Source: Tetramitus jugosus (Eukaryota; Protista; Heterolobosea). Taken from it: a stretch of DNA of 64,000 nt. The position numbers and the translations under genes are program-made. Of this stretch, positions 6,075 to 18,279 are shown piece after piece; the stretch's first letter is position 1, and each line of letters starts with the position of its first letter. The stretch is taken from NCBI GenBank assembly GCA_937625935.1, contig OW569385.1, positions 248,001 to 312,000 of the forward strand, read 5' to 3'. Below the pieces are notes generated by a model. That model was not told where the DNA came from and searched no databases. It was given only the letters and a program-made list of their open reading frames with translations.

Positions 6075-6935
6075 TCACTCGCCATCCATGCCATAAAGAG
6101 CTATCGAACTGGACTCGCAAAAATCGATCACCTTCTTTTTAAAGGCATTGTCTCTTCGGCTACGATACCAACGAAGTGTGTGAATACCCTTCAAGAAAAG
6201 GAATCCTTTCTCTGTGATGGACTCTTGATTACAACCATCCAGTGTAAGACTCTGGATGCCAGTCAAATACTGAAATGCATTGTCTGTGATGCCCGTACAA
6301 TAACTCATATTAAGTGTGTGAATACCAACCAAATTAATAAAAGCATTATCGGTGATATGTTTGCAATCAGCTATAGAGAGTGTGTGAATGCCAGCTAAAT
6401 AAGTGAAGGCATTGTTTGTAATTTTCTCACAACCACTCATGTAGAGCGTGTGAATGCCAGACAAGTAAGAAAATGTCTTGTCTGTAATTTGTTTGCAACT
6501 ACCGATGTGGAGCGTATGAATGCCAGCCAGATGAACAAACGCATTGTCTGTGATTTGTATGCAGCCAACCATAGAGAGCGTATGGATACCAGTCAAGTGA
6601 GCAAAAGCACTGTCCGTAATCCGCTTGCAACCACCCATAGAGAGCGTGTGAATGCCTTCCAAATATTGAAAATGCTCATCCACCACATTCTGATGCAGGG
6701 TCAAGTAAACGTTAAACAGTGTTCCTTTTCCTAATCGAAACCAGTGTTCAATTTCTTTCTCTTCCAAACCTCGTTTTAGTCTTCTCCTCTTGTTGGACAT
6801 GAGCCATCGATTAAATTTAAATTGATTGATTCCTTTGCAAGTGTAACTCAATTGCAACCATTCTCGAGTGTCACAAAACTCAATGACTTTTGACCAGGTA
6901 TCCGGGCAAAGATCAGAACAAATTTCAGTGATCAT
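6075..6935 (-). CDS. F-box-like protein with 22-aa cysteine-containing leucine-rich repeats
   Basis: N-terminal F-box-like segment DLCPDTWSKVIEFC...LSYTCK. Seven full and one partial LxGIHTLxxxxCxxITDxAFxx repeats. First ATG at 6935. Confidence 0.8.
   Translation of the reverse strand: MITEICSDLCPDTWSKVIEFCDTREWLQLSYTCKGINQFKFNRWLMSNKRRRLKRGLEEKEIEHWFRLGKGTLFNVYLTLHQNVVDEHFQYLEGIHTLSMGGCKRITDSAFAHLTGIHTLSMVGCIQITDNAFVHLAGIHTLHIGSCKQITDKTFSYLSGIHTLYMSGCEKITNNAFTYLAGIHTLSIADCKHITDNAFINLVGIHTLNMSYCTGITDNAFQYLTGIQSLTLDGCNQESITEKGFLFLKGIHTLRWYRSRRDNAFKKKVIDFCESSSIALYGMDGE
6170..6662 (-). repeat. Coding tandem repeat, about 66-bp unit (LRR array)
   Basis: GTGTGAATGCC/GTGTGAATACC-type cores recur about every 66 bp on the + strand, matching the GIHTL repeats. 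Confidence 0.85.
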
Positions 6936-7200
6936 GGAGGGCACTTTGGCGATAATTGTGGTTCCAAACAAAAATGTTCCATTGGGCGCAATCCCTCAAG
7001 TTCCACAAAACCATAATAAAACCGGACCATTACATCCTTGCCATCTCTTTTGTTGCATCTCAGGCCATGAGTGCTAAGCAACCACTACAGCAATTTTCCT
7101 TATTCACTGTCAAGAAAAATCCCGCGAGGGGTGGTTACTGTTTTGTGCTTTGAAACTCGGTCACCTTTCTGGTGAAATAACTCAATTTCACTTTCTGGGT

Positions 7201-7320
7201 GTCTACGTTCATACAATGGTGGAACCACCTCTTCCCATTTCGAATAGAGAAGTTAAGCACCATCTGGCTGAGTTAGTATTGAGATAGGAGACTACTCGAG
7301 AACCCTCAGTAATGTAGGCT
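7201..7320 (+). rRNA. 5S ribosomal RNA gene (solitary copy)
   Basis: GTCTAC...CATAC start, GAAGTTAAGC (box A region), GTTAGTA, GGAGAC...GAA, 3' GTAGGC pairing with the 5' end (helix I), ATGGTG/CACCAT helix II. About 120 nt, followed by TTTT. Confidence 0.93.
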
Positions 7321-7323
7321 TTT
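7320..7323 (+). terminator. RNA polymerase III oligo-T terminator of the 5S gene
   Basis: TTTT immediately after GTAGGC. Confidence 0.7.
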
Positions 7324-7386
7324 GCTTTGGTTTTAGGGAACTATGAACTTTATCAATTTGTTTACAAAACGCCAGTTGTTTGGCAT

Positions 7387-8526
7387 TCAGTGGATTCTTG
7401 GTGCATGAGCAATATCGGGCAAGCCGGCATAAACCATGAGTTCAAAGCCACACATGTCTGTCCCTCTGAGGAATTTGAAGAAGCCTTGCATGCCCCACCT
7501 GGTGCCCCAACCTATTCACATTGAAAAACACCATGTTAGACGACAAAATAACAAGCAACATATGCCACACGACTACGATTACATACTGTTCGCAACCAAC
7601 CAATAAGGTAAACCAGATTCACTATCCACACCATAACCAATCACTCTCACAGCATGAACGCCCATATAACCGCCAGAAACATGTCTGTACACACCAGAAC
7701 TATAGCTCATAAAATCACCAAACACATTGAACAGAGCATCAACGGGACCATTGGTCACCAACTCCTTTTGAATTACTTCAGCTCTGTGAGCTGCCTTGTC
7801 CAAATAGTTTCCAATATGCGAGTACTTGCTCACCTTGAATCTGAGTTGATCCATCTTCCATTCCTTACCGTAGCATGTCACATTCTTTGGACATGTACCA
7901 CCTGTTCCGGTTTGTCCCGACGTATAAGGCAAACACTCATCAGGAACAATACCGTACTTTTCCAACTCTAAATACACGAGTTGAGATGGACCACCACTGC
8001 AATGGAATGTCAGAGAACTACAACTTACCAAGTCCTGAGCAGACAAAAGCACATTAATCGTACCGTTGGAATGAATACAGAAACGATCAGACAAAATACC
8101 AGAGGAAGCAAAGCTATAGCAACTACCACAGTTGCCTTGATCACGAATTGGATGAATGCACTGTGGCCATTGAACTCTTGAGTCAAACTCTGAGGGAAGG
8201 CCATTGGAATTTCCAATCACTGGAACTGACGGAATCACTCCGCTTTCTCTCTGTAGTTGCTGTTCGCGCCGTTGTTTTTGGAGGGATTCCCAAAGAGCAA
8301 CAGGCATATCAGTCTTGTGCATAAACAAACGATCTCTTGCTTGCTGGGCACTCCAACGAGCAAATGGAGATTGATCAACAGTCTCAACTGCCTTCCATCC
8401 ATGCTTTGGGTTACTATTGATGAAATCGAGCATGGATTGGTCAATGACCTGGGCAAAAACGATTGATGCAGTGCATAGCACAAAAAATCCAAGCAGTAGG
8501 CACAAGGTCAGGTATGAATGTCTCAT
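7387..8526 (-). CDS. Cathepsin B-like papain-family (C1A) cysteine protease, secreted/lysosomal; 2 exons
   Basis: Signal peptide, [22 protein letters not shown] (catalytic Cys), HAVRVIGYG. Intron 7586-7512 (GTATGT...AATAG) restores [19 protein letters not shown]; stop at 7387. Confidence 0.92.
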
Positions 8527-8820: not shown

Positions 8821-9402
8821 ATGCTGCGACAACGATATCACTTGCTTTTCCACACGTTCACGAATCATGTGTGCCCTACTGATGCCAGACACAGCATTCT
8901 CGCGTTCTCTTCTTTGTTCAACAACATTCAGAAACGTCATGTCAACTGGTGGAGATCACCAACGGAAGACACAATCCCCAAAGAGACTGTTGATGCCTTC
9001 TACTCGGCCATGGAGAAGACAAGCTTCCATTTTCACAAGATCTGCCCGTATATCAAATTCGGCCGTCCAGGTATTTACAAGCTCACGAACAACAAGAATG
9101 GAATGATCTATGTGGGCATGAGTGTGAACATGTACTTTAGAATCAAGCAACATGTGAAAGACGGATTCAATTACAAGTATGCTGAGCTAAAGACGAATCA
9201 AGGAAGGTTCAGTCTGGTGAGCAAGGGTATTGCAGAGAGTGATTTTGATTTTCGGTTCGATGTTCTGGAAGTGGTTCCTCGGAAGGGCAACTTGTGGGAC
9301 GATAGAGAACTAAAGAAGATACTGAAAGCCAGAGAAACATATTACATTGAAAAACTACGGCCCTATGAAAGAGAGATTGGATACAATGTCGTCAAACAGT
9401 AA
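8821..9402 (+). CDS. GIY-YIG endonuclease (I-TevI/homing-endonuclease-like catalytic domain)
   Basis: PGIYKLTNNKNGMIYVGMS..MYFRIKQH, F.FDVLEVV, catalytic RETYYI and C-terminal GYNV. Confidence 0.85.
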   Translation: MLRQRYHLLFHTFTNHVCPTDARHSILAFSSLFNNIQKRHVNWWRSPTEDTIPKETVDAFYSAMEKTSFHFHKICPYIKFGRPGIYKLTNNKNGMIYVGMSVNMYFRIKQHVKDGFNYKYAELKTNQGRFSLVSKGIAESDFDFRFDVLEVVPRKGNLWDDRELKKILKARETYYIEKLRPYEREIGYNVVKQ

Positions 9403-9517
9403 AATCACGTGGTGCATTTCCCAAAAAGAACTTAAAGTTCGCTCTTGTGTTGGAAAATTGAGTACCTCACCTGAACCAAAACACGAAAAAAACTAACTCA
9501 CAAACACCTGCAGTGAC

Positions 9518-11089
9518 ATGTTGTTTCCATTAGTTATTGAAAATATTGAAGATATTCGTGCTTGCATTGGCAATGACACTGATTTTGTCATCAAAGAGAA
9601 AGGTCCGTTCATCTATGTGAATTACAAGAGAATGACAACTTCCACATTTCCTGAACTCTTCAAGACAACAGGCAATCTGGTTGATTCCTCACAGTACACT
9701 CAGAAGGAATGGAACTATAGAAAGATGAGAAGAGAAATGAGAGGACTCGTGTTGGACAAGGCCTCTGGTGGCATTGTTGCTCGTAGCATGCACAAATTTT
9801 TCAATATCAACGAGAGAGAGGAGAGCTCAGCCGCGTTCATTCAGAAAATGATTTCAGAGAATCCTGAGATGCAAGTTACAGTGCTTGAAAAGTTGGATGG
9901 ATCGTTGACAAGTGCGTTGCTAGTTCCTGTCGAAGCTCCTACAACTGATGATGAAGAACAATCTCACAAGGATCGCTTGTATCAATTGCGTTTCAGATCA
10001 AAGATGGGATATGAAAATGATCACACGGACAGTTTGGAGGAGTTTCTAGGTATTGAAAAGCTATTACACACGATTCGGTATCGATGGAATGAATCAACAT
10101 CAAAGTATGATATGATACAGTTGGATGAGTCGGTAGAATTTCCAGTAGAGGTGAGAAATCTATTTGACTTCTGTACCGAATGGATTGGAAATGGATATAC
10201 TTGCCTATTTGAATTCTTCTCTCACGAGAATAGAGTCGTTGTGGACTATGATGAGCCTTATTTGAGCTTGTTAGCAATTCGAGACACTAGAAGTGGTGTT
10301 TACATACCACATGATCAAATGGTGGAAACAGCTCAAAAGTATGGCATTCCTCATGTGAGATCTGTTCCTTGTGACGAATTTTCAAAGAATAGAGATACCA
10401 TGATTAGTGATCTACTCGAGTATTGCTACAAGCAGGAACGAATTGAGGGATATGTTGTTAGATTGACAGATAGGTCGAATCCAACTTGGACTGAAATGTA
10501 CAAGACAAAAACAAAGTGGTATTCAGATATTCACCGAGTTAGAGAGCTTATAGCACTGAACAACATGTCAGAACATTATGTTTGGGCATTAGTGATAGAT
10601 AATTGTGTTGATGACGCATTGCCTACACTCAGAAGTGAGGAAGACAAGGAAAAACTGATGAAGTTCAGTGACACATTATCAAAATTGATCACATCTGCTG
10701 CTGATGAGATGGAAAAGGAAATCAAAAATGCAAGAGAGCAATCAAAACTCGATGATGAACTCAAAGACACATCCTTTGACATGAAGATATTTGCCAAGTA
10801 TGTCGCACAAGTTGAAAAGAGGAGAGGTTCTTCCTTTGCCAAGTGCATGTTCAGAATCCACAAGGACATGCTTTACTCACCTGACGCTTCTGTAGAAGAC
10901 TTGGTTTGTAAGATTCTAAAGGACAAGGCACAGAAATCGATACCGGATTGTCAGTCATTCCTTGGTCAAAAGATTCAGTTTTATGCTGAAGACGACAAGA
11001 AGAAGACAAGAGTTGGTTATGTTTCGAGACGTAGACAAAGACAACAACAATCTGAATCAGCCCAGACAACACAAGAGCAGACACAATAA
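9518..11089 (+). CDS. ATP-dependent RNA ligase, T4 Rnl1 family
   Basis: REMRGLV, HKFFNINE, motif I EKLDGS, RSKMG, TCLFEFFSHENRVVVDY, LLAIRD, motif IV EGYVV, motif V YKTKTKWY..IH, all collinear with T4 Rnl1. Confidence 0.88.
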   Translation: MLFPLVIENIEDIRACIGNDTDFVIKEKGPFIYVNYKRMTTSTFPELFKTTGNLVDSSQYTQKEWNYRKMRREMRGLVLDKASGGIVARSMHKFFNINEREESSAAFIQKMISENPEMQVTVLEKLDGSLTSALLVPVEAPTTDDEEQSHKDRLYQLRFRSKMGYENDHTDSLEEFLGIEKLLHTIRYRWNESTSKYDMIQLDESVEFPVEVRNLFDFCTEWIGNGYTCLFEFFSHENRVVVDYDEPYLSLLAIRDTRSGVYIPHDQMVETAQKYGIPHVRSVPCDEFSKNRDTMISDLLEYCYKQERIEGYVVRLTDRSNPTWTEMYKTKTKWYSDIHRVRELIALNNMSEHYVWALVIDNCVDDALPTLRSEEDKEKLMKFSDTLSKLITSAADEMEKEIKNAREQSKLDDELKDTSFDMKIFAKYVAQVEKRRGSSFAKCMFRIHKDMLYSPDASVEDLVCKILKDKAQKSIPDCQSFLGQKIQFYAEDDKKKTRVGYVSRRRQRQQQSESAQTTQEQTQ

Positions 11090-15520: not shown

Positions 15521-16969
15521 ATGATCAATAACAATCGCGGCAGTGGTGATGAGGAAAGCTTTGCATTGAATCCAGTGCTCAAATGGTCAGCCATTGGAAT
15601 TACAGTTGCAGCGACTGCTTTTTGGTTGCAAAAAAAGTGCAGATCTTGCTCATCCAAACCTTGTGCAACGACGAACATGAAAGGCCGTAACGACACTGAG
15701 CTTTCTTCTGCTTGTGCCATTCATAAGAAGCTTCCACGTCACTTGATCAACCAAAGTGTGAACAATGTGCCTACTCCTGCATTGTTGATCGACATGGACA
15801 TTCTGGAGGACAACATGACCAAGATGAACGATTCCATGAAACCATTTGCTTCTTCTCAAGTGAAAATTAGACCACATTACAAAGCTAACAAGTGCCCTGA
15901 CCTGGTCAAAGTGCAATCAAGGATTCATGGCAGTTTAATGTCTGGTGTTTGTTGTCAAAAGTTGAGTGAAGCAGAATCCATTTTCATGGGACAGCAGACT
16001 GGTGAGCTCGGTACAAGAGATATTCTCATAACAAACGAAGTGGTGGAGAAAATGAAGCTTGAAAGAATTGTTAATGCTGCATTCAGGAATTCGAAACTCA
16101 AGATATCACTGGTTGTCGATAATGAGTCAGTTGTGAGACAATTGGCTCACATTTGCAAGGAAAAGACCATGCAGGCTGATGGCCAATTCAAGATATCGCT
16201 GATTATAGAGTACAATGTGGGTCAAAATCGCTGTGGTGTCAATTCTATTGAAGAGTTGATTCATTTGGCTACAGTGATCACCAAGGATGATTCATGTGCC
16301 CCATTCTTGCACTTTGCTGGAATTCAATGCTACCAGGGCTGGAATCAACATATTCGCTCATTCAGTGATCGAAAGCAAGCTGTCGAAAAGGTGAATAATA
16401 TGGCAAGCGATGCTAAGAATGCTCTTCAAGAATCTGGTCTCGTTTCTTCCGATTTCATAGTGACTGGTGGAGGTACTGGTTCGTACTTGTTTGAAGCAGG
16501 CTCCAACGTGTTCACAGAAGTTCAACCTGGCTCCTATGTATTCATGGATGCCGATTACAACAAGAATCTCATGGAGAGCGATAGAACAGTAGAAGATGAA
16601 CCGGATTCAACATTCCGCCAAAGCTTGTTCGTCCTAACAACGGTCATGAGTAAGGCTGTGTCAAACGAAAGAGCTGTTGTTGATGCTGGAATGAAGGCTG
16701 TTTCCTTAGACAGTGGTGTTCCATTGCTCAATGATCGCGAGCAACGAAAACTGGCCGAGTACAGACCTGGTGGCGACGAACATGGCATCATCGTGCCGAC
16801 AAACGAGACGGACAAGTCGGCTATTGCCGCTCTATCTGTCGGAGATAAACTAAGGCTCATCCCAGGTCATTGTGATCCCACTGTGAATATGCATGACTGG
16901 TTCATTTGTGTACGAGGTGATCGAGTCGTTGACGTGTGGCCAATCGAAGGCCGTTCCTGTGGATTGTGA
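15521..16969 (+). CDS. Fold-type III PLP enzyme, DSD1 / D-threonine aldolase / 3-hydroxy-D-aspartate aldolase family
   Basis: TPALLID, RPHYK (PLP lysine), GQNRCGV, TGGGTGS, EVQPGSYVFMD, VDAGMKAVSLDSG.P, DEHG, metal-binding PGHCDPTVNMHD. N-terminal hydrophobic segment. Confidence 0.85.
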   Translation: MINNNRGSGDEESFALNPVLKWSAIGITVAATAFWLQKKCRSCSSKPCATTNMKGRNDTELSSACAIHKKLPRHLINQSVNNVPTPALLIDMDILEDNMTKMNDSMKPFASSQVKIRPHYKANKCPDLVKVQSRIHGSLMSGVCCQKLSEAESIFMGQQTGELGTRDILITNEVVEKMKLERIVNAAFRNSKLKISLVVDNESVVRQLAHICKEKTMQADGQFKISLIIEYNVGQNRCGVNSIEELIHLATVITKDDSCAPFLHFAGIQCYQGWNQHIRSFSDRKQAVEKVNNMASDAKNALQESGLVSSDFIVTGGGTGSYLFEAGSNVFTEVQPGSYVFMDADYNKNLMESDRTVEDEPDSTFRQSLFVLTTVMSKAVSNERAVVDAGMKAVSLDSGVPLLNDREQRKLAEYRPGGDEHGIIVPTNETDKSAIAALSVGDKLRLIPGHCDPTVNMHDWFICVRGDRVVDVWPIEGRSCGL

Positions 16970-17164
16970 GCTGTAAACCCTATCAACGGATTGGGTGTCT
17001 GTGATTGTTCCGATCCCTGACGTTCAGCTGAATTTGTTGCCGACGAATAGAAAATTTTCATTGTAAAGGGACGAGTACCATGCTTGTTCTTGTGTGCGCA
17101 GCAACACAACTTTCATCAAACATCCAAAACAAACCAAATCAAAAAACATCCTCAAATTCCCATA

Positions 17165-18190
17165 ATGAGAGCAATCATCCTTGTTACCCTCATGCTGTTG
17201 GCTATTGCAGCCTTCGCCACTGCTCTTCGCTCAAACAAGAAGCTTAGAGTCAGACCAGAGAGCTTGCCACACAGTGATAGATCCATTAGACCTGACTGGG
17301 CAAGACCAACTCCAACCTTCCCAACCAGACCTGTCGTCTACTCTGACATTGTTGGACCAGCATGGACTAGACCAAGCCCAACCATTCCAAGAAGAAAGAA
17401 TATTCCTTTCAGTGACAGGTGGGAGAAGCCTGACTGGACTAGACCATCTCCAACTTTCCCAACCAGACCAATCATGTTCTCTGACAAATTTGCTCCAGAT
17501 TGGACCAGACCAAGCCCAACTATTCCAAGAAGAAAGTATACTCCATTCAGTGACATTGTTGGACCAGCATGGACATGGACAAAGCCATCTAGACCTATTC
17601 TGTACTCTGACAGATTTGTTCCACAATGGACCAGACCAAGCCCAACCATTCCAAGAAGAAAGAACATTCCATTCAGCGACAGGTGGGAGAAGCCTGACTG
17701 GACTAGACCATCTCCAACTTTCCCTCATCCAAAGAATGTGTACTACTCTGACGCTATTCCAAGAGAGTGGCTAAGACCTCTTCCAATTCAACCAGTTAGA
17801 AATGTTGAGTTGTCTGATATTGTTGCTCCACGAGGAGGACGATACCCAAAGCACATCATGTTCTCTGATGAAGAAGGTGAAGAGTATGATGAAGAAGACT
17901 GGGGAGTCAATGGAAACATTGGTAGTGGTGGCAACTGGAACTTGGGTGGCTCCTACAGCAACAATGGATTCACTGGTAATGCTAACGTTGGCAACAATGG
18001 TCAATGGGGTGTTGGTGGATCCTACACTAACAATGGATGGACTGGTGGTGTCAATGCTGGCAACAATGGTCAATGGGGTGCCAATGTCGGCTACTCCGGA
18101 CAAGTTGGCGGTGGAACACTGAATGCTGGTGGCCAAGTCTCCAACGGTGGAAACTGGGGAGTCGGTGTCAACTACAACTTGAAGTTCTAA
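17165..18190 (+). CDS. Secreted multi-repeat peptide precursor (nine Pro/Arg/Trp-rich xSD-delimited modules plus a Gly/Asn/Trp-rich C-terminal domain); function unknown
   Basis: ATG at 17165, signal peptide MRAIILVTLMLLAIAAFATA, ten (H/Y/F/L)SD sites, acidic spacer EEGEEYDEED, 96-aa Gly-rich tail. AATAAA about 20 bp after the stop. Confidence 0.85.
   Translation: MRAIILVTLMLLAIAAFATALRSNKKLRVRPESLPHSDRSIRPDWARPTPTFPTRPVVYSDIVGPAWTRPSPTIPRRKNIPFSDRWEKPDWTRPSPTFPTRPIMFSDKFAPDWTRPSPTIPRRKYTPFSDIVGPAWTWTKPSRPILYSDRFVPQWTRPSPTIPRRKNIPFSDRWEKPDWTRPSPTFPHPKNVYYSDAIPREWLRPLPIQPVRNVELSDIVAPRGGRYPKHIMFSDEEGEEYDEEDWGVNGNIGSGGNWNLGGSYSNNGFTGNANVGNNGQWGVGGSYTNNGWTGGVNAGNNGQWGANVGYSGQVGGGTLNAGGQVSNGGNWGVGVNYNLKF
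17279..17869 (+). repeat. Coding tandem repeat array, 51-72 bp units
   Basis: Recurrent TGGAC(T/C)AGACCA cores. The block at about 17364-17460 is nearly identical to about 17628-17724 (264-bp offset). Confidence 0.9.
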
Positions 18191-18279
18191 ATGTTTTTGT
18201 CCCTGATTAATAAACTCTAGTTTGAACCCTGGCATCGATACAAATGCATAAATTGTTTGTTATGTCGATCGAGGGGGAA

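Follow-up and report, generated by a model that had tools for sequence, protein, structure and literature searches.

What does Tetramitus jugosus make from a secreted protein that is largely built of short, similar modules, each closed by the same Ser-Asp motif? This heterolobosean soil amoeboflagellate phagocytoses bacteria, fungi and protists and forms cysts (PMC11106597), and the gene in question lies within a 64,000-nucleotide stretch of its DNA, positions 248001-312000 of contig C42, which was analysed at full length and is called the window here. A sequence-only reading had ended the gene at 17899, which is too short. Translation of the window showed that the reading frame continues to 18190 (17165-18190, forward strand, 341 aa, stop codon at 18188-18190), adding a 96-aa Gly/Asn/Trp-rich domain, while the modules listed by that reading were reproduced exactly by translating 17165-17899. 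The product, with a computed mass of 36.1 kDa minus the signal peptide, runs from a signal peptide through nine cationic Pro/Arg/Trp modules and an acidic linker into the terminal domain. Overlapping open reading frames in other frames were rejected as shadows of the repeat. With moderate confidence, we regard the protein as the precursor of an antibacterial peptide cocktail, which would be cleaved at its acidic joints and shortened in steps of two residues, probably inside digestive vacuoles.

The first 20 aa (17165-17224, this and all following parts on the forward strand) form a likely signal peptide, as had been proposed, with a hydrophobic core, A-x-A at positions 18-20, a basic residue at position 2 and a helix predicted by AlphaFold. 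The 11-residue Kyte-Doolittle mean is approximately 3.0 over aa 3-15, no hydrophobic segment follows further on, and the full-length homologues all carry a similar signal-like N-terminus. A basic pro-piece (17225-17278) closes with the first joint, His-Ser-Asp. Modules 1 to 4, each of 21 aa and followed by its Ser-Asp joint, occupy 17279-17347 (net charge +3), 17348-17416 (+4), 17417-17485 (+2) and 17486-17554 (+4). They are succeeded, again with their joints, by module 5 (17555-17611; 17 aa, +2), module 6 (17612-17680; 21 aa, +5), module 7 (17681-17752; 22 aa, +2), module 8 (17753-17818; 20 aa, +1), in which the Leu before Ser-Asp is Phe in other strains, and module 9 (17819-17869; 15 aa, +3). 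A long acidic linker (17870-17899), present at the same place in homologues, precedes the terminal domain (17900-18190), a predicted eight-stranded sheet whose last residue, Phe, is directly followed by the stop codon.

Counted without Ser-Asp, the modules comprise 15-22 aa with net charges of +1 to +5 and two to five Pro each (approximately 24% Pro overall), and Trp is present; retention of Ser-Asp would lower each charge by one. For module 2, the calculated mass is 2402.37 Da without and 2604.43 Da with Ser-Asp. Asn occurs within four of the nine modules and internal Asp within four, Arg-Arg-Lys is found only inside modules 2, 4 and 6, and the N-termini vary (Arg, Lys, Ile, Ala, Leu, Phe and others), with no conserved Gly. 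AlphaFold left aa 22-241 unstructured (pLDDT <50), on a shallow alignment of six sequences.

The boundary motif (H/Y/F/L)-Ser-Asp was confirmed at 10 of 10 boundaries, as was a hydrophobic second residue after Asp in 8 of 9 modules. When aa 21-245 were shuffled 100,000 times, the motif occurred at most four times, compared with the 10 occurrences observed. This test overstates the case, because a two-module unit (period 138 nt, 3.2 copies) was recently duplicated in tandem to give modules 1-7, so that the ten sites are not independent. The joint Ser, however, is encoded by TCT as well as by AGT/AGC, and the use of both codon types points to selection on the residue. Read from the sequences, the mixed Ser codons together with the retention of the joint in distant homologues are better evidence than the shuffle count.

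The gene is intronless and transcribed. The stretch was found in 20 public runs, six of them recorded as RNA, and contigs of three RNA runs from three studies (two soil metatranscriptomes and an oligo-dT library) span the gene with no intron-like joint across it. Lack of transcription had been named as grounds for abandoning the sequence-only reading; instead, the RNA contigs cover the gene. In the oligo-dT run (X13), the contig starts at 17121, 44 bases 5' of the ATG, and its loose end is what we take to be a template-switch-type adaptor, so that 17121-17164 is the 5' UTR with a probable transcript start near 17121. At the other end, the RNA contigs terminate at 18197-18222, close to an AATAAA at 18209-18214, giving a short 3' UTR (18191-18222). 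Strain variation was also visible. A G>C exchange at 17812 in four of four runs replaces Leu by Phe before the ninth joint and preserves the motif, and contigs of the two soil RNA runs skip 129 bases in frame (17569-17699), which may reflect a strain with two fewer modules or an artefact of repeat assembly.

Contigs from the RNA runs, unlike those from the DNA run, were far deeper over the gene than over its neighbours, although such depth cannot rank genes and is a hint only. Depth bears on a different explanation, namely that the protein stays uncut and serves as a structural or adhesive secreted component of the cyst wall, surface coat or extrusome matrix, with glycosylated Ser/Thr-Pro repeats and a Gly-rich sheet that polymerises. 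Wall proteins do contain Ser/Thr-Pro-rich disordered repeats and Gly/Asn-rich sheets, and deep RNA contigs would suit an abundant protein, as far as so poor a measure goes. Tetramitus also makes cysts (PMC11106597). We nevertheless consider a structural protein quite unlikely, since it leaves unexplained both the invariant joint, which grows by dipeptides, and the free swapping of unrelated cationic modules between identical spacers.

A search of the T. jugosus CCAP 1588/3C genome (paTetJugo1.1; 26,350,207 bases, 56 contigs) revealed four paralogues. Two form a tandem pair on one contig (G000:C43:73168-75404; L011:5165-5836 and 6608-7405) and share the plan of the window protein: they contain four to five SD/AD joints, and their Gly-rich terminal domain closes with Arg-Phe. 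The other two constitute a second subfamily (L012:3740-4726, forward strand, on C4; L013:3763-5025, reverse strand, on C43), in which a signal peptide is followed by a four-Cys unit (C-x3-C-x9-C-x3-C), by numerous beta-hairpin repeats set apart by acidic spacers and by the same terminal domain in shortened form. The four-Cys unit resembles alpha-hairpinin, and this subfamily gave Porin_4 and Defensin_2 matches, both sub-threshold. Beyond the genome, approximately 20 database homologues were obtained from metagenomes, sequencing-run assemblies and one fragmented assembly (GCA_037189345.1), which contains both subfamilies. None is convincingly bacterial, and the weakest two (P0017 and P0018) look spurious. 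The genes flanking the homologues are eukaryotic, two of them 65-66% identical to their T. jugosus counterparts, which makes other heteroloboseans the likely hosts, the distant P0005, P0006 and P0016 aside. No Naegleria-named match was among the homologues, which does not show absence from that genus. A metagenome scan with the terminal domain returned only one copy, 100% identical. A genome-wide DNA pattern of three spaced (F/Y)-S-D codons recovered the precursor gene (5 hits) and 11 others against 12 in the control; at this chance-level background, no other precursors were revealed by the pattern.

The homologues differ in which units they string together. In P0003, a single chain has hairpin units as well as Pro-rich units and the terminal domain, and P0012 additionally carries a cationic helix. 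P0005, P0006 and P0016 combine the Gly-rich domain, Pro-rich units and cationic amphipathic helices between Asp/Glu spacers, and P0005 and P0006 possess a six-Cys unit as well. The cationic helices of the homologues reach net charges of up to +14 and hydrophobic moments of up to 0.98, and the Pro-rich units of P0005/P0006 share a core with modules 1 and 3 of the window protein. As a side observation, P0005/P0006/P0019 (L031, L032) and P0016 (L035) are long precursors comprising 10-12 modules of four antimicrobial-like types, from samples with GC contents of 51% and 34%. That unrelated cationic units swap freely between like spacers speaks more strongly for a processed effector cocktail than any other observation.

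The joints themselves obey a common grammar, which was evaluated in 12 proteins; all of these sequences are related, so p-values overstate their independence. Runs of small and acidic residues are preceded by a hydrophobic residue in 56 of 69 cases against a background of 21%, and the joint takes the form hydrophobic-([Ser/Ala]-[Asp/Glu])n-x-hydrophobic with lengths of two, four, six or eight residues. Homologous joints are extended in whole small-acidic dipeptides (e.g., SD-AE-AE), the length is even in 15 of 16 longer runs, and two homologues of 90% identity are distinguished by one inserted dipeptide in a joint. Asp is present in all 55 joints and closes the first dipeptide in 53 of them, while among the later dipeptides Asp is the second residue in just 9 of 28 and Glu in most. 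The joint as a whole ends in Glu in 12 of 50 homologous cases. Directly after the joint, Arg or Lys is the first residue in 19 of 41 modules (6.3 expected), and the second residue is hydrophobic in 33 of 50 across the family. The dipeptide runs can equally be read in the other phase, as Asp-Ala and Glu-Ala, and a cut between Ser and Asp would match the spacer phase of yeast alpha-factor and apidaecin. The sequence-only reading stood to lose by a loss of the Ser-Asp sites among relatives, and SD/AD joints are kept in paralogues and homologues alike. With the joints retained there and the gene transcribed, its idea of a secreted multi-peptide precursor with a conserved, putative processing joint has gained ground.

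With regards to the cutting enzyme, release directed by Asp had been suggested, and legumain/AEP (C13) genes were named as something to look for. The genome does contain two legumain-type C13 genes, plus one GPI8-like gene, and both legumains keep the catalytic His-Gly and Cys motifs at the sequence level. Asp is favoured at the first dipeptide, in line with the suggestion; Asp cleavage alone is insufficient, because joints that are lengthened by dipeptides and end in Glu call for dipeptide-wise trimming in addition. Cathepsin C strips N-terminal dipeptides until the first residue is basic or Pro adjoins the bond (PMC10470614). Four cathepsin C loci were found, each with the catalytic Cys motif (G000:C28, C39, C15 and C5; L061-L064), and this small expansion could include a specialised precursor-trimming enzyme. 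Modules opened by Arg or Lys fit such trimming, because basic N-termini stop cathepsin C (PMC10470614), yet a test of the full stop rule was weak, with an immediate stop in 56% of modules compared with 45% of shuffles. Legumain, in turn, has Asn as its preferred site; cleavage after Asp requires low pH and is rare in vivo (4 of 116 non-Asn cuts; PMC10862022). The Asn residues in four window modules speak against legumain, barring a shift in the enzyme. An Asp/Glu-specific S46 dipeptidyl peptidase was absent from the genome search, which detected its controls, while the search for an astacin-type enzyme cutting before Asp gave no match and left its control undetected too. A papain-family protease with a trace of a cathepsin B propeptide is encoded at 7579-8526 of the window (reverse strand), approximately 9 kb from the precursor gene, and nothing ties the two together.

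The simplest model from these sequences would be a cut that requires the first Asp, after which the leftover dipeptides are removed. Whether legumain makes this cut after the first Asp, with cathepsin C then trimming the leftover Ala-Glu or Ser-Glu, we rate as about evenly balanced. A cut before Asp or before Ser by a papain-, pepsin- or subtilisin-type enzyme appears slightly less probable than that, and some other way of cutting at the joint is improbable. Phe is the last residue of the terminal domain before the stop codon, and P0005 has a spacer after the corresponding Phe, a hint that the aromatic residue may form the C-terminus of mature modules.

The presence of two legumains also invites the idea that a legumain ligase cyclises each module head-to-tail, which would make the product a protist cyclic RiPP. 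All window modules end in Asp, then x-hydrophobic, and Asp followed by x-hydrophobic fits plant AEP preferences. Plant AEP precursors (PawS1, cyclotides, vicilin-buried peptides) likewise hold repeated cores in a secreted precursor, as do fungal Kex2-processed repeats. The AEP-type core end, Asx with a hydrophobic residue two positions on, is shared by 8 of 9 window modules and by 33 of 50 across the family, provided that the cut falls after Asp, and the AEP gene belonging to such a system has its counterpart in the T. jugosus legumains. AEP-processed cyclic cores, however, have a conserved N-terminal Gly and a Cys knot, both absent from the T. jugosus modules with their variable N-termini. 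Where a joint ends in Glu or is extended by dipeptides, moreover, the next module could not be ligated cleanly at Asp; joints of the same kind also border helices and a 9-kDa sheet, and no tailoring enzyme is adjacent. Cyclisation of the modules is unlikely, and a cyclic RiPP as the explanation of the whole locus is very improbable; this alternative of the sequence-only reading found no support. In the fungal Kex2 repeats/dikaritins, the joints are Lys-Arg or Arg-Arg and a DUF3328 gene is a neighbour, neither of which was seen at the T. jugosus locus.

Beside the precursor gene, we found no modifying or tailoring enzyme and no DUF3328. It is flanked by genes for a D-serine dehydratase-like protein and a TPR protein. 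The former, a PLP enzyme, is encoded at 15521-16969 of the window (forward strand), and its gene adjoins the precursor gene upstream in the same orientation; a functional link was rejected, as the homologue contigs have different neighbours. Elsewhere in the window, a GIY-YIG nuclease gene adjoins one for a T4 Rnl1-type RNA ligase (8821-11089, forward strand).

The terminal domain differs markedly in composition, with 31 Gly, 21 Asn, 6 Trp and zero acidic residues among its 96 aa. AlphaFold predicted a single-layer sheet of eight antiparallel strands (pLDDT 74) with alternating faces, one mostly of Trp, Val, Leu, Tyr, Phe and Ala and the other of Gly, Asn, Ser, Thr and Gln. The terminal Phe is almost invariant across the family, and the last strand carries hydrophobic residues at -3, -5, -7 and -9 ahead of the Phe at -1. 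Phe at -1 with alternating hydrophobic residues is the C-terminal pattern of bacterial outer-membrane proteins, and since any amphipathic strand ending in Phe would match it, this is a lead only. A relationship to porins, VDAC or other barrels was rejected: overlays were obtained only on slices, at Foldseek E values of 0.11 or worse and a best Z of 9.2 among near ties, which is generic for a beta-meander and says nothing on function. No significant match to Pfam or the PDB came from sequence or profile searches with the whole protein, its modules or the terminal domain as query; language-model features placed attacin and gloverin clusters as weak leads (0.85-0.86, under the reliable range of 0.9).

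The domain could be the sole effector, with the Pro-rich repeats being an expanded degradable propeptide or chaperone. All family members have kept it, while their modules differ freely in number and sequence. Still, the Pro-rich core recurs in the distant P0005/P0006 at a site remote from the Gly-rich domain, and nine copies cost more than a spacer requires, so that we regard this explanation as a far-fetched one. The Gly-rich domain of P0005 is placed first and its terminal Phe leads directly into a spacer, which marks it as a free-standing module.

In the favoured model of a processed antibacterial cocktail, the acidic joints would mask the cationic modules during transit. An endoprotease would then cut the joint, either upon secretion or in the acidic setting of a lysosome or food vacuole, and an exopeptidase would remove the remaining dipeptides. 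By analogy with the insect peptides, the freed linear Pro/Arg peptides would probably act inside bacteria, while the Gly-rich sheet, like the attacins, would probably act on the outer membrane. The likely role is the killing of ingested prey or pathogens. Against the cocktail stand the modest net charges and the missing sequence match to any known antimicrobial peptide.

Modest charges would also suit a precursor that is processed into peptides with a different role, either directed at fungi, competing protists or predators or signalling between cells in the manner of neuropeptides or pheromones. The grammar of acidic spacers and aminopeptidase trimming is that of cnidarian neuropeptides, whose precursors place acidic or Ser/Thr spacers before multiple peptides (PMC7523074), and the diet of Tetramitus includes fungi and protists (PMC11106597). 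Cnidarian preprohormones, however, have an amidation Gly, basic C-terminal sites and very short peptides; the T. jugosus precursor has neither such sites nor such peptides, its modules being long, variable and without the amidation Gly. The family's mix of Pro-rich, strongly cationic helical, Cys-rich and amphipathic sheet units also suits an effector cocktail better than a single receptor ligand. We therefore consider a role other than antibacterial unlikely, and the antibacterial cocktail was compared with known antimicrobial precursors.

The insect apidaecin, drosocin and buletin precursors share with the T. jugosus protein a signal peptide (here deduced from hydrophobicity) and repeated cationic Pro/Arg units, and apidaecin-type precursors share the dipeptide trimming of spacers, which is presumed for T. 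jugosus. The honeybee apidaecin precursor also gives nine peptides (PMC9233930). Peptides of the apidaecin/drosocin type kill non-lytically, with the ribosome or DnaK as target. Drosocin is O-glycosylated at a Thr next to Pro, and the same could hold for the T. jugosus modules. In contrast to the basic furin or dibasic sites of apidaecin and drosocin precursors, the T. jugosus joints are acidic (10 of 10 hydrophobic-Ser-Asp), and its modules contain Trp, are less cationic and come from a discoban amoeba. Neither Pfam nor the PDB gave a match supporting this similarity, with short peptides being hard to detect and PDB chains <20 aa excluded.

[quoted passage not shown] The order of a Pro-rich part and then a Gly-rich domain recurs in T. 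jugosus, but the R-X-(R/K)-R furin site is replaced by an acidic linker at that place, nine Pro-rich units stand against one, and the domain is Asn/Trp-rich and nearly uncharged. None of the 20 aligned family members matched the Attacin_C or Attacin_N Pfam profiles at E values up to 10. By its sequence, the T. jugosus precursor would resemble the apidaecin and attacin/diptericin precursors in working, but it is not a member of either, having no furin sites and no detectable homology.

Closer in phylogeny, Naegleria fowleri processes multi-peptide naegleriapore precursors of the saposin type (PMC11542183), so the earlier statement that no such system is known in this kind of protist was too strong, although these are saposins. 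Naegleriapore B, likewise from Heterolobosea, and Dictyostelium AplE/AplK are amoebal antibacterial precursors yielding several effectors, an activity that is proposed here. The naegleriapore/amoebapore proteins (SAPLIP) are disulphide-bonded six-Cys saposins, whereas the T. jugosus precursor has no Cys or saposin domain. Multi-peptide antibacterial precursors are already known from amoebae, but only of the saposin type. In the literature, incompletely covered, neither this precursor family nor Pro-rich antimicrobial precursors in amoebae were found described.

A bolder and rather doubtful proposal is a heterolobosean modular antimicrobial system that exchanges Pro-rich peptides, cationic helices, Cys hairpins and an attacin-like sheet among secreted precursors with a common acidic-dipeptide processing code, and in which the sheet, ending in an outer-membrane-protein-like beta-signal, jams the bacterial Bam machinery or gets inserted by it. 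If true, 'animal-type' linear antimicrobial peptides and polypeptide precursors would exist in Discoba, via deep ancestry or full convergence.

Apart from lysozymes and saposin-type pore formers, little is known of how phagotrophic protists kill the bacteria that they ingest. If confirmed, the antibacterial cocktail would be a second effector class in a lineage far from animals, offering exact masses to seek and short peptides that can be synthesised. It would also place the Pro-rich and Gly-rich design of insect immunity in a soil amoeba, under a different processing code, and would provide unexplored templates for peptide antibiotics as well as a motif for mining precursors from protist genomes.
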